Origin: Mobula hypostoma
Lineage: Eukaryota
Direction: 5' to 3'
Assembly (NCBI RefSeq): GCF_963921235.1
Contig: NC_086101.1
Coordinates: 31,496,001-31,560,000, forward strand
DNA length: 64,000 nt
The notes under the pieces are model-generated. The model had not been told where the DNA came from. It was given only the letters and a program-made list of their open reading frames with translations, and ran no database searches. This document shows positions 3,592 to 61,073 of the stretch, piece by piece (the first letter of the stretch is position 1; every line of letters begins with the position of its first letter). The position numbers and the translations under genes are program-made.

Positions 3592-3605
3592 TCAACAGGT
3601 GGCGC
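3592..3605 (+). promoter_or_regulatory. Candidate CTCF motif (intron 1 of the class II alpha-like gene)
   Basis: TCAACAGGTGGCGC matches the CTCF core CC(A/G)(C/G)(C/T)AG(A/G)(G/T)GGC(A/G)C at 12/14. Confidence 0.55.
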
Positions 3606-5913: not shown

Positions 5914-6064
5914 TCTTAATCTCCCGGGTCTCGCAAACGCGACCTCTCCTCGTCCAGCACCAGTTCCGCTCAATCTGCCACCAGTTTCTGCCACAGAATA
6001 AACCTAACTTCAGTCGTTCACTCTCGTGCAGTCTGTTATTGATATGCGCCTGAGGACAGCTGAA

Positions 6065-6129
6065 CCAATCAGACGCCGAGATTCTCACTCGTCATCTGTT
6101 TCCAGGTGGAATACATACCAATTTGCTCC
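6065..6129 (-). promoter_or_regulatory. MHC class II-type S-X1-X2-Y promoter module (module 1, proximal)
   Basis: X = CCTGGAAACAGATG (6106-6093; HLA-DRA recalled as CCTAGCAACAGATG). X2 = TGACGAG. Exact 20-bp spacer. Y = CTGATTGG (6072-6065). Weak S-position GGAGCAA 16 bp upstream of X. Confidence 0.85.
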
Positions 6130-6401
6130 GAATTACACCAAACTGGATTTGCTTTCGTTGAGGAAGAGATGCTCCTAGAAGGGGAGCATTCTTCAGAAGA
6201 AACATTTACAAGAGACTTTTGACCTGCGTTGAACTGAACAGTCTACGCAGATAATTTTACTTCACCCTGTCACTGCGGAGTTGAAGGAGAGGACGGATCC
6301 ACTCTGTTCAGTGGGTCGGACAGCACCAATAAGTGAGAAACTGGGTTAATTTCGCAAACAGGAGGAAATCTGCAAATTCTGGAATTTCAAGCAACATGCA
6401 T

Positions 6402-6849: not shown

Positions 6850-7990
6850 CTCTATCTACCCTGTTCCCAACCTATCTCTGTAAAACTGCTCTTCCTTTTC
6901 CTCATTTCCTTCACCTCCACTGCATCTGTTCTCAGAATGTGGCTTTCCTTTCCAGGACATCTGAAATACCCTCCTTCTTAAAGAATGGGATTTCCATCTC
7001 TCCTCTATTGATACTGCGCTCACCTGTATCTCAGCATTTCCTGAAAATCTGCGCTCACCCCATCTTCCCACCACTTTAACAGTGATAGAGTTCGCCTTGT
7101 CCTTACCTAACATCCCATGAGCCACCACATCCAACATATCATTGTCCACAACCTCTGCCATTTCCAAAGGGATCCTATCACTGAACATATCTTTATCTCT
7201 CCACCCCCTTCCTGCATTGTGTTGGGATTGATCCCTATGCAATTCCCTTTTCCATTCATCCCTCCCTCCCGGCACTTATCCCTGCAAGCGGTCAAAGTGC
7301 TACACCTGCCCAATCACCTCCTACCTCACCTCCATTCAAAGCCCCGAACAGTCCTTCCAGGTGAGGCAACACTTCATTGCATCCATTGTGTCTGGTGCTC
7401 CCGATCTGGCCTCCTCTACATTGGTGAGGCATGTCATAAATTGGGGGGCTGCTTCGTCAAGTGGAATTTCCTGGTGGCCAAGCATTTTAATTCCAATTCT
7501 ATTTCCCGTTCCAACATGTCAGTCCATGGCCTCCTCCTTTGCCAAAATAAGGCCACCCTCAGGGTGGAGGAGCAACAACTTACATTTGTCTGGGTAGCCT
7601 CCAATCTGATGGCATGAACATCAATTTCTCCTTCTAGTAAAATATTCCCTCCACCTCTCCTCTTCCTCTATTCCCCACTCTGGCCTTTTACCTCTTCTCT
7701 CCTTCCTATCACTTCCCCCTGGGTCCCCTCCTCCTTCCCTTTCTCCTATGGTCCTCTCTCCTCTCCTATCAGAGTCCTTCTTCACCAGCCCTTCACCTTT
7801 TCCACCCACCTGGCTTCACCTATCACCTTCCAGCTAGCCTCCTCCCCTTCCTCTCACCTTTTTATTCTGACATCTTCCACCTTCCTTCTCAGTCCTAAAG
7901 AAAGGTCTCGGCCTGAAATGTCAACTGACTATCATTTCCATAGATGCTACCTGACCTGCTGAATTCCCCCAGCATTTTGTGTGTGTGTTA
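6850..7990 (+). mobile_element. Penelope-like element 3' fragment with GIY-YIG endonuclease relic
   Basis: Decayed HIQHII..L.HFQRDP.T.HIF, CKR.KCYTCP and CVWCSRSGLLYIGE motifs, a CT-rich 3' UTR and the terminal repeat. Confidence 0.8.
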
Positions 7991-17171: not shown

Positions 17172-17359
17172 TTAAATAGTCCAATGAGATGTAAACTGGA
17201 AAGCCCCTAGATCATGTTCAGGCATGTTGAAACTGGTTGATTAAAATTATCTGTTGATTTGCTCAACAGTAACTCCACCTCAGTTGCCACCATCACCTAA
17301 TGAGAGGGATGATCTCGCAGGCGTCACAGCTGCTGGCTAAAATGGATCAGTGAGAGTCT
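17172..17359 (-). promoter_or_regulatory. S-X-Y module 2 with downstream NF-kB site, second CCAAT and TATA-like box
   Basis: S-like AGACTCT (17359-17353), 15-bp spacer, X GCCAGCAGCTGTG with X2 TGACGCC, 20 bp, then mutated Y CTCATTAG (17304-17297). GGGGCTTTCC at 17207-17198, ATTGG at 17185-17181, TATTTAA at 17178-17172. Confidence 0.65.
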
Positions 17360-27334: not shown

Positions 27335-27453
27335 TGGAAAGTCTCCGCTCCAGCCTCAACAGTAACTTCACACCCTGATCCACCATCAGCCAATGAGAGG
27401 ACAGAGCACCGAGCCATCACCAGTTGCTGGTTGAAATGGATCACTGTGGGTCA
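27335..27453 (-). promoter_or_regulatory. S-X-Y module 3 with NF-kB-like site
   Basis: S-like TGACCCA (27453-27447), 15-bp spacer, X ACCAGCAACTGGTG (27431-27418), 20 bp, Y CTCATTGG (27397-27390), and GAGACTTTCC (27344-27335). Confidence 0.75.
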
Positions 27454-42765: not shown

Positions 42766-44293
42766 TGTCGCAATGGGGGGGGGGGGGGCATTGGGAGCAA
42801 GGGTGGACACAAATGCAAGACACATCTTGTGAGGTTACTTAGATTTAGTTTATTGTTTGATACCAGGAGAGCAAGGCAGGAGCAGGAAATAGCAAACTGG
42901 ACAAGGATTCAGGACTACGACTAGGCTGGGACAAGGGTCTGAGCTTGGAGTCGGAATTGGATCCCAGAACTAGCGGAGACATGAAGAGGCTACGGTAGGA
43001 CTCTGAGACAGAGACTGGGCAAGGACCCAGTACCTGGGTTGTGCCCCGGGCTCGGACCCCAGAACCAGGCATGGACATGACATGGGCTAGGGAGAGGAGG
43101 AACATGGAAAACAGAGCCTTGGTCTCGGGAGAACAGGTACATGGAACCATGGACACATACACAGAACAGAGAGCCAGGACCCCTCCTTGGGTACAGGACA
43201 TAGGGCCAGGATTCACACACAGAACAGAGAGCCGGGACCCCTCCTTGGGTACAGGACATAGGGCCGGGACTCATGAACCCCCGCGGGGCAACGGCAAGAT
43301 GGCCTGACTTACCCCACGGAGGCGAGGACAAGACACGACAAGACATGACCCCCCGTGGGGCAACGGCAAGACGGCCTGACTTACCCCACGGAGGCGAGGA
43401 CAAGACACAACAAGACATGAGCCCCCGCGGGGCAACGGCAAAACGGCCAGACTTACCCCACGGAGGCGAGGACAAGACAAGACCAACACGAAAGTACACC
43501 AGACAGTACCTATCTAGCTCCGACAATAGAACTAGACCAAGGTGCAGGCCAGGGCTGCAGACGAGGGCTAGAGGCGAGAGGGGCAGAGAAGGGATTCAGA
43601 TGGGGGGTAGGACAGGAATCACAGACCGCCAGGGCCAGGACTTGAGATGGTACTTGGATGCGCCAGGGACAGGACTTGACTCGGAACCTGGATGCCGCCA
43701 GGACCAGGACTTGACTCGGTACGTGGATGCGCCAGGCCCGGGACTTGACTCGGTACTTGGATGCTGCTAGGGTCCTGACTTGACTCTGTACTTGGATGCC
43801 GCCAGGCCCAGGACTTGACTTGGTACTTGAATGCCCCCAGAGCCAGGACTTGACTTGGAGCCTCCAGGTAGTGGCGAGCTCTCAACTCGGCCTGGGAAGA
43901 GTAGACAGCGGTTCCTGATTCCCTCCAGCGGGTTACCTAACGGACCCACCTCGATGAGGAAACTTTGCAGGCTTGTTTTGGTGAGGTAACTTGACAGGGG
44001 TGCTCCGGTGAGGAAAGGCAAATTACCGGCACTCGCTTCGGGCAGAGACTAGGCTTGCTCCGGCCAGATGACATTGGCACGCCGTACCTTTGGTGACTTT
44101 GCAGACGCTCCCGCGCCGAACAGCTGAAAGCCGGAGACTATAAACTACCAGTTCAGCCGAGAGTAAATTGCCTCTAATCACCAAGGCCAAGGGACACAGG
44201 AAAACAGGGAACCAAAGGGAAACAGGGAGTCAACGGTCCGGATCGTAACATAAACAAAGTAAATTTAAAGAGACCCTGATCCGGACCATGACA
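42766..44293 (-). mobile_element. Solo LTR (~1.5 kb) with internal tandem repeats
   Basis: TGTC...GACA termini; 5-bp TSD ttctc/ttccc; AATAAA near the minus-strand 3' end; internal ~57-bp x2, ~69-bp x3 and ~34-bp x6-7 arrays. Confidence 0.75.
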
Positions 44294-47079: not shown

Positions 47080-47700
47080 AAGACTGATCCTCTACCTCCT
47101 TCCTTATCATCACTGAGGGCCCCAAACTCCATTCAGGTGAGGGGACACTTCATCTGCGAGTCTTTCAGGTGTCATCTATTCTGCTCCCAGTGTGGCCTCC
47201 TCTACATCAGTGGGACCAGATGCAGGCTGGTCTGCAAATTGAACACCTTCACCCTGTCCACTGCAAAAGGCAGGATCTCCCATTTCAATTCAATTTCACA
47301 TTACCATTTTGACATGTCTGTCCACAGCCTCTTTTACTGCCATGATGAGGCCAAACTCATGTTGGAGGAACAAAACCTCATATTCTGTTTGCATAGCTAC
47401 CAATATGAATGCATATGAACATTGATTTCTCCAAGATCTGGTCATTTCTCCCCTTCTCTCTTTTTCCATTCCCCATTCTGGTTACCAATCTTCTCTCACC
47501 TGGCCATCACCTCCTTCTGTTTCTCCATCTCTTTTCCTTTCCTCTCCTCCATTGTCATCTCTTATCAAACTGCTTCTTCAACACTTTATCTCTTCCAGCT
47601 TCCCCCACCCCCCCCCCCGCACCTTCCCTCTCACTCGGTCTCACCTATCACCTACCAGCTCCTCTCTCCACCTTTCCATTGTTAACATCATTGCCCTTTT
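47080..47700 (+). mobile_element. Penelope-like GIY-YIG 3' fragment
   Basis: PNSIQVRGHFICES...CSQCGLLYISGTR motif and a CT-rich tail. Confidence 0.78.
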
Positions 47701-48182
47701 CTCACCGTTACCATCAGATAAAAGGTACAGAAACCTGAAGGCACACACTCAGTGATTCAGGAACAGCTTCTTCCCCTCTGCCATCCGATTCCTAAATGGT
47801 CATTCAACCCATGAACACTACCTGACTTTTTAAAATATATATTATTTCTGTTTTGCACGATCTTTTAATCTATTCAATATACACTCTAATTAATTTATTT
47901 ATTTATTTATTTTTACTTTTTTTCTTCTATATTATGTATTGCATTGAACTGCTGCTACTAAATTATCTAATTTCACGACACATGCCGATAATAGACTTGA
48001 CTCTGACTCTGATTCCTCCACTTTCTTATTCTTGCTTCTTACCCCTACCTTTTCCAGTCTTGATGAAGGGTCTCAGCCCTTCCATAGATTCTACTTGATT
48101 TACTGAGATAATTCAACTTTTTGTGTGTTCCAGGAAGGAAATTTTGGGGCCAGTTTCGATCTCTATGGTACCAAGGTTCCAG

Positions 48183-48298
48183 GCGCCCTCTAGAGGAGAC
48201 AGGGCCAGCTGCACGTTAACACGTCACCAGTGAGTGGTGCACACAACGCAGCTCTGTCCAATGGTAAAATGAATCTGTGCTCGTCATTGGTTGCCATG
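48183..48298 (-). promoter_or_regulatory. X-Y module 4 with adjacent CRE half-site and CTCF motif
   Basis: X CATGGCAACCAATG (48298-48285; contains the RFX half-site GTTGCCATG), X2 TGACGAG, 19 bp, ACCATTGG (48265-48258), GGTGACGT (48228-48221), and CCTCTAGAGGGCGC (48196-48183). Confidence 0.7.
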
Positions 48299-49329
48299 CA
48301 GAAACAGCAGAGAAACAATCGGCGGTGGGTTGCGGGTGCAACAAAAGAATATGAAACACACTGGAATTGAAATTCATTTATTGTTACGGAAGAAGTTTTT
48401 ATTTATTGTGTGCAGAGAGAAATTTAAAAGAGACTTGAGAGGCAACCTCATCTCACAGAGGAAAATACAAACATGGAATGAGCTACCAGAGGAAGTGTTG
48501 TGGCACTTCCAATGGGTCAACAGGTTGAGAAGGATATGGGCCAAACGTGGGGAAATGGCGGTGGTTTAGATGGGCATGTTGGATGGAATAGGCCAAATGG
48601 GCCGAAGAGCCTGTCTCTGTGCTGTACAAATATATGAATATATGATTCAGAAAGGGAAAGGGGCGGCTGGAAAATCTCAACTACAATCAGAAAAACTGCA
48701 ACCTCTCAAACCGCAGTCATTAACGTGAGGAGAGAAGCCAATGAAACAGCACGGCTTCAGTTTGTCACCTGTTGCTGGGTAGATTTGTTTTTGAATTTGT
48801 GGGCTGGCGGAGGCACCCCTGGGTGATTGGACTTGGCTAAATGGAGGAGATGAAGGAGGGCAGAGGAGAGGGATAAATTACCATGTTGGAACTGTGATAA
48901 CAGACCAGATGCTGGAAATATCCAGCTCAGGCAGTGGCAGTGGGGAGATTCGGGAACAGTTATAACACCTCGACCATCAGGCCTTTGAACCAGAGGAGAC
49001 AGCTTCACTCCCGCCATCACTGAATTGTTCTCACAACTTATGGTCTCACTTTCAAGGACTTCATCTTGATATTTATGAATATTTATTAATTTATTATTAT
49101 TTCCTTTATTTCTTTTTGTATTTACAGTTTGTTGTCTTCAGCACATCAGTTGTTTCTCCGTCCTGTTGGATGCAGCCTTTCATTGATTCCATTGTTTCTT
49201 GTATTACTGAGAATGCCAGCAAGAAGATGAATCTCAGAGTTGCATTTGATGATATTGTTTCTTGTATTTTAAGAATGACAGCAGAATCAACAGAGCAGGA
49301 AGCTCAAGAAGGGATTGTACAGTATGGAC

Positions 49330-60452: not shown

Positions 60453-60744
60453 TTTCACTTCCTCTCGGTCTGTCTCAGTACACGGAGAGTGGGGGTTGGG
60501 GAGGAGAGGTTCAGTCATTGCAGCTCTGGGGTTGCTCACGGTATTGATAAGGTTAAAATTATTGTGTCCCTGTAATCTGTCAAAAGGGATGTGGGCTGTG
60601 AGCGTCCCAGGACTGAAACCAGAGCTGCGGCAATACAAACCCGGCCCAAACCAGTGATGTAAACATCGGCCAATCCCGCCCAATCACAGTGTAGCGGTGT
60701 GTGGCGTCACCAGTCTCCGGGTAAACCTGTCGGCCTCCTTGTCC
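60453..60744 (-). promoter_or_regulatory. X-Y module 5 (class I-like) with double CCAAT, GC box and a nearby Ets-IRF composite element
   Basis: S-position GGACAAG (60744-60738), 16 bp, X CCCGGAGACTGGTG (60721-60708), X2 TGACGCC, then ATTGG-GCGGG-ATTGG (60684-60670). GGAAGTGAAA at 60462-60453. A plus-strand donor CGG/GTGAGT lies at 60788. Confidence 0.7.
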
Positions 60745-61073
60745 TTTCCCTGTGGGTCTTGTGCCCGGGCTGTGTTGTTGCCCACGGGTGAGTGACTACA
60801 CCCAACCCACAGTGCAGCGTGGGTAGGGAGGCAGGGGTGAAAATCCTGGGGCAACCTCACAGAACATGATTAAAGTATTGAACGTCAATCGGAGGTGGCA
60901 TTGACGGGCATCTCTGTGTTTGCCACTTAATATCCCAAACCAGAATATTATGCTTGTCTTATTTTTTGGGGTATAGACTTCATTACATGAAGACAGAAAA
61001 TCTTATATTGGAACAACACAGAGGAGGCTATTTAGTCCATGATGCCTCACAGTGAACAACCGCATTGGCTTTA

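Follow-up and report, generated by a model that had tools for sequence, protein, structure and literature searches.

Does the cluster of class II-type promoter motifs at 48.2 kb in the window, i.e., the whole 64-kb stretch of ray DNA analysed here, act as a distal control element of a class II gene, and does it resemble the human XL9 element, as the original prediction proposed? Human class II expression is organised by distal X-Y modules together with CTCF sites, the study of which has so far covered mammals only, and our literature searches found no shark or ray description of distal X-Y modules or CTCF sites at class II. The positions of the relevant features are listed in Table 1.

Table 1. 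Positions of the class II promoter, the X-Y modules and the CTCF-consensus motif in the window.
Feature	Position	Strand	Remarks
Class II promoter	6065-6110	minus	GGAAAC-AGA-TGACGAG-18 nt-ATTGG; X2 = 6088-6094
Single-copy core holding the 48.2-kb module	48084-48420		blastn within the window and contig depth in four organisms
CTCF-consensus motif CCTCTAGAGGGCGC	48183-48196	minus	62 bp beyond the Y box
TGACGT CRE half-site	48221-48226	minus	31 nt beyond the Y box, 24 nt before the CTCF motif
Y box ATTGG (inverted CCAAT)	48258-48262	minus	24 nt from the X2 start
X2-type CRE-like box TGACGAG	48280-48286	minus	direct reading
X1-type box, perfect RFX half-site CATGGCAAC at 48290-48298	48287-48299	minus	GCAAC = 48290-48294
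Second X-Y module GCAAC-AGG-TGACAAA-18 nt-ATTGG	48738-48775	minus	38-base span; X2 start to ATTGG 25 nt

The sub-elements of S-Y modules are under strict constraint in sequence, orientation and spacing (PMC1802633, PMC4374748). When read directly, the minus strand at 48258-48299 gave GCAAC-3 nt-TGACGAG-17 nt-ATTGG, and all five motifs of the original prediction were found on this strand, each where it had been placed. The X1 box contains the RFX half-site GYAAC and lines up with its counterparts in the remaining modules of the window. X1 (CATGGCAAC) and X2 (TGACGAG) are separated by CAA, and the same 3-nt gap between GCAAC and X2 is found in the modules at 6.1, 27.4, 48.75 and 60.7 kb. The predicted CCAAT was present as ATTGG, fitting a Y box in both distance and orientation, but not at the 27-bp spacing originally given: counted from the first base of X2, the distance is 24 nt, as compared with 25 nt in the promoter and the relatives (sequencing runs of four other organisms, coded B, J, C and D). 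The human HLA-DRA promoter has the same 3-nt X1-X2 offset and 25 nt from the X2 start to ATTGG. The X2 box had been described as the same as that of the proximal promoter; TGACGAG is indeed identical to 6088-6094, but most relatives carry an extra T after 48280, so that their X2 reads TGACGAAG and their X2-Y spacing is 25. This length difference at 48280-48281 may be polymorphic in organism B, the two contigs of which disagree. No S (W) box, the usual place of which is ~16 bp upstream of X, was recognised at the 48.2-kb module, and 0 columns upstream of X1 were common to the six aligned modules. In mammals, the S box is important in recruiting the co-activator. The Y-box flank, with a T directly 5' of CCAAT, is sub-optimal for NF-Y.

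A search for the full composite, G[CT]AAC-N2-4-TGA[CT][GA]-N19-21-ATTGG, gave three matches in the window (at 27427, 48294 and 48775) as compared with 0.013 expected per simulated window, with search patterns that were partly picked after the data had been seen, and all three lay on the minus strand, which also encodes the class II alpha-like gene. The match at 48775 belongs to a second module, absent from the list of five modules in the original prediction, which lies within unique DNA (48655-48900) at a distance of 480 bp. The 48.2-kb module is therefore one half of a pair, with a low-copy repeat between the two. The differences listed for the relatives at the second module fall in a spacer (48757) and past the Y box (48732 and 48734), and none in its three cores. 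One contig of organism D carried an 8-bp insertion in the X2-Y spacer of this module.

In the alignment of the six window modules, similarity was confined to X1-X2-Y. Flank similarity was detected by blastn in the 17.3/27.4-kb pair only, and paralogy of the 48.2 or 48.75-kb modules with other modules was rejected for want of any such similarity. The two paralogues, 17262-17352 and 27355-27446, are 76% identical; decay at 17.3 kb has turned X1 into GCAGC and Y into ATTAG, which provides an internal example of a drifting X-Y module. Apart from this pair, either the cores would have been kept as the flanks diverged completely, or the modules would be of separate origin. If the 48.2-kb module is a duplicate of a promoter, 15 core bases and two spacings would have outlasted the flanks; no other evidence within the window would argue as well for constraint.

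The class II alpha-like gene is represented on the minus strand by a leader exon (~5913-5846) that encodes a signal peptide and follows the textbook promoter of Table 1, the remaining gene lying beyond the window. The 48.2-kb module is situated ~42 kb upstream of it, in the same orientation as its promoter. This leader exon, 42 kb away on one side, represents the only known flanking class II-type gene, and on the other side no gene was found in 16 kb (ORFs scanned up to 60.2 kb). A Pfam scan of stop-to-stop frames, of at least 62 aa in 34.4-57.85 kb and at least 66 aa in 1-27.4 and 57.8-60.2 kb, gave confident matches to RVT_1, Exo_endo_phos, Peptidase_A17 (Pao-type) and the LINE-associated ALKBH8_N, as well as a marginal match to TPR_Rlf (E = 0.0077), and revealed no MHC or Ig exon remnant in the frames scanned. 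As the domains obtained are those of transposons, the 48.2-kb module sits in transposon-rich intergenic DNA. A downstream gene was rejected, the Pfam matches being of transposon type apart from the marginal TPR_Rlf; the sole downstream ATG, at ~48085, falls inside a repeat with copies at 7848 and 62360. Protein-space searches for orthologous contigs with the minus-strand frames 48193-48402 and 48760-49137 gave no match, and a look-up of the neighbouring LINE ORF returned no record. A structured RNA or DNA hairpin at the core was also rejected, as Rfam gave no match in 46-50 kb at E up to 1 and the fold z-score was -0.09 against shuffles. In these scans, the core was explained neither by an exon nor by a transposon protein or an RNA family. 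The sampled words of the core were at 0.00 in runs that we guessed to be RNA of the same species, which is weak evidence since these runs are small and their tissues unspecified.

The claim that the motifs lie in unique sequence was borne out: blastn of 48130-48415 found no second copy in the window, and the depth was that of a single copy in all four relatives. Repeats surround the core at 47692-47831 (SINE-like, very high copy), 48013-48078 and 48420-48650 (low-copy), and begin ~100 bp downstream of the module by blastn. A GC-rich block (59% GC) at 43151-43855 is built from three short tandem arrays, the repeat periods of which are 58, 72 and 69/35 bp. The CpG observed/expected ratio was 0.60-0.63 in the core (48084-48420) as compared with 0.30 in the whole window, and reached 0.89 at the promoter (5935-6175), giving mild support to the view that the core is a regulatory element shielded from methylation. 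The ratio was ~0.6 at the 60.7-kb module (60550-60790) and 0.17 at the 27.4-kb module, which hints at an escape from germline methylation by part of the modules only.

Next to the X-Y module lies CCTCTAGAGGGCGC, a CTCF-consensus motif that includes a 10-bp palindrome, CCTCTAGAGG, and that would provide the CTCF site expected of an XL9-type element. The CTCF pattern CCNSYAGRKGGCRS matched once in the window as compared with 0.07 expected, and a consensus search allowing up to 2 mismatches likewise gave one match (0.15 expected). The motif differs by one mismatch from the strict consensus, CCASYAGRKGGCRS, and is the sole site with at most one mismatch in the 64 kb, whereas up to 2 mismatches from this strict consensus gave 9 matches vs 13.9 expected. 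A weak CTCF-like motif, TCAACAGGTGGCGC, was observed on the plus strand at 3592-3605, within the first intron of the class II alpha-like gene, with 2 mismatches; it is the best convergent partner for the motif at 48183-48196, and the pair would enclose the promoter together with the modules at 6-48 kb, but its occurrence is at chance level, given the number of 2-mismatch matches. A transposon-borne origin of the CTCF motif was ruled out by the single-copy depth of the core in four genomes. Strong CTCF motifs occur in vertebrate DNA about once per 30-60 kb, and at this density the chance of finding one no farther than 100 bp from any of six modules was estimated, post hoc, at roughly 3%. The motif is oriented to lower coordinates, i.e., towards the class II alpha-like gene, and lies between this gene and the modules at 48.2, 48.75 and 60.7 kb. 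Since it separates the gene from these three modules, a role as a barrier would be equally possible. In the little skate genome, oriented CTCF motifs mark domain boundaries, and their orientation predicts the direction of loops (PMC10115646).

The core was found in all four relatives, in single-copy contigs of ~89-93% identity, and the unique flank 48655-48900 was ~94% identical. Among the listed differences, none fell at 48177-48205 (CTCF motif), at 48254-48270 (Y box), in the TGACG core or in the GCAAC core, an intactness that is firm for organisms C and D only, the low-depth contigs of J and B being poorly represented. Organism D altered X1 at 48295 and 48296 only, both of which are non-core positions. 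The CpGs within the CTCF motif (48184-48185) and X2 were kept among the listed differences, while 4 of the 9 core CpGs varied. The TGACGT half-site of the original prediction is present in the ray, but it was altered in every relative (48226 A>G in 4/4, 48223 G>A in 3/4) and is therefore not a conserved part; it is probably a species-specific product of chance. Variable positions numbered 2 of 49 in the motifs and 16 of 175 outside them, which is no significant excess of conservation (Fisher p = 0.37). With a divergence of only 6-11% from the relatives and flanks that are ~94% identical, this comparison shows presence but not constraint, and selection is invisible at this distance. At this depth, the module is present in four relatives, but the element is no better kept than its flanks.

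Taken together, these results lead us to propose tentatively, with a probability of about 0.45, that the locus at 48.2 kb, which forms a tandem pair with the second module, is an orphan distal docking module for RFX, CREB/ATF and NF-Y, to which a CTCF tether oriented towards the gene may belong. The module would dock an enhanceosome of these three factors and thereby CIITA or NLRC5, orthologues of both of which exist in shark (PMC8455134), and we infer from its motifs that factor binding and enhancer activity may be expected at 48.2 kb. Its single perfect RFX half-site could suit any member of the RFX family. By analogy, the module may work in the manner of XL-7/XL-8 and of the distal X-Y (S'-Y') enhancers of mammals, and it was probably produced when a unit carrying a promoter was duplicated long ago. 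The co-orientation of all modules points to such an origin by tandem duplication. S-Y modules function in either orientation (PMC1802633), and the shared orientation is therefore uninformative on present function. If occupied by CTCF, the consensus motif may tether the module to the base of a loop enclosing the class II alpha promoter; by the orientation rule of the skate, a loop from this minus-strand motif would run to lower coordinates (PMC10115646).

The likeness to XL9 held in part. A CTCF consensus stands beside an X-type module in unique DNA and faces a class II-type gene, and for these reasons a CTCF-tethered distal element is a fair hypothesis, but the ray module is complete and canonical, unlike XL9. 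The X-like box of XL9 binds neither RFX nor CIITA directly and has its CTCF site ~0.24 kb off, between two class II genes, and its CTCF binding, enhancer blocking and CIITA-dependent promoter contact have been experimentally defined (PMC2292219). The two share the neighbourhood of an X-type sequence and a CTCF site in intergenic class II DNA, as well as a proposed role as a tether of class II promoters; the ray differs in its canonical X-Y module, in the shorter distance to the CTCF motif (62 bp vs ~240 bp in XL9) and in having only one known neighbour gene. The close CTCF motif appears to be the single XL9-like trait of the ray element, and the original prediction is thus partly supported as an analogy, whereas homology or common descent with human XL9, its 'ancestral' variant, is unsupported in a comparison that covered relatives of ~90% identity.

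Since the ray X-Y module is canonical, it stands nearer to the distal X-Y enhancers and XL-7/XL-8 than to XL9. With the distal S'-Y' or X-Y enhancers, including the X-Y box upstream of HLA-DRA (Krawczyk et al. 2004, J Immunol 173:6200, cited in PMC2292219 and PMC1802633), it shares a complete X1-X2-Y with promoter-like spacing at a non-promoter site upstream of a class II alpha-type gene, as well as the occurrence of several copies per locus. It differs from them in its distance (42 kb vs a few kb), in its unrecognised S box, in the CTCF consensus directly beside it and in its host, a cartilaginous fish, and is a putative enhancer. [quoted passage not shown] The CTCF boundaries of the little skate, a related batoid fish, show the same vertebrate CTCF consensus, but they are backed by ATAC-seq and Hi-C (PMC10115646), the ray site being a candidate predicted from sequence. 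The 48.2-kb element would therewith be a further, non-mammalian candidate among known element types.

One possible alternative, which we consider unlikely, is that the module is an inert relic, i.e., a promoter left from a copy of a class II-type gene, the body of which was deleted or overwritten by transposons; the module would now be drifting neutrally next to a CTCF-like motif that is a mere bystander. The co-orientation of all modules with the gene is what a tandem duplication of genes would produce; the 17.3-kb module is visibly a decayed paralogue of the 27.4-kb one, the divergence of the core equals that of its flanks, the S box was not recognised, no transcript words appeared in the guessed-RNA runs, and human XL-7 and XL-8 provide a precedent (PMC2292219). 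However, the MHC or Ig exon remnants that such a history would leave were not found in the Pfam-scanned frames, and the loss of flank similarity with three cores and both spacings intact is unlikely under long neutral drift. Furthermore, the CpG observed/expected ratio of the core is twice the background, and an origin as a relic is compatible with activity, RFX and CIITA binding having persisted at XL-7 and XL-8.

It is more doubtful that the locus is a true XL9-type element, namely a CTCF insulator or loop anchor in which the X-Y boxes do not bind RFX directly and the promoter is contacted by CIITA-CTCF bridging. Such an element, for which XL9 itself is the precedent (PMC2292219), would agree with the sole strong CTCF consensus within 64 kb, the unique sequence, the retention of the methylation-sensitive CpG of the motif among the differences listed for the relatives, the orientation of the motif towards the gene and a location that separates the gene from the 48.2, 48.75 and 60.7-kb modules. 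Its whole support, however, is the motif; the module is far better formed than a degenerate XL9-type X box, so that it would more simply be expected to bind RFX directly, a single flanking class II-type gene is known, and the best convergent partner, at 3592-3605 on the plus strand, is at chance level with its 2 mismatches.

Chance co-occurrence of short motifs, with neither function nor common origin, is very unlikely. The TGACGT half-site is species-specific, the X2-Y pair alone and the X1-X2 pair alone are common (1.4 and 1.2 expected per window, respectively), and the patterns were partly chosen post hoc; against this, the full composite far exceeded its expectation with every match on the strand of the gene, the strong CTCF consensus was expected only 0.07 times, and its proximity to a module has, by our own estimate, a chance of ~3%. 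Least probable of all is a live promoter of an unannotated transcript, e.g., a non-coding RNA resembling the low-level extragenic transcripts of the HLA-DRA distal X-Y box (PMC2292219): the module has the geometry and orientation of a promoter, and the expected start, ~50-70 bp past the Y box, falls on the GC-rich CTCF-like motif, but neither a leader ORF nor an exon follows downstream, repeats begin within ~100 bp, and the guessed-RNA runs, although small and of unspecified tissues, held 0.00 of the core words.

The docking module that we prefer offers a target of ~120 bp in a ray on which to test whether long-range RFX/CIITA-CTCF control matches the MHC in age. If the 48.2-kb element is unbound, it would be another decaying promoter relic. 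A bolder proposal, which we hold to be very doubtful, is that the coupling of an RFX/NF-Y module to an oriented CTCF anchor represents an old, selected class II design that was already present in cartilaginous fish. If this is true, CTCF-tethered X-Y looping, as at human XL9, would date to the origin of the MHC and not to mammals.
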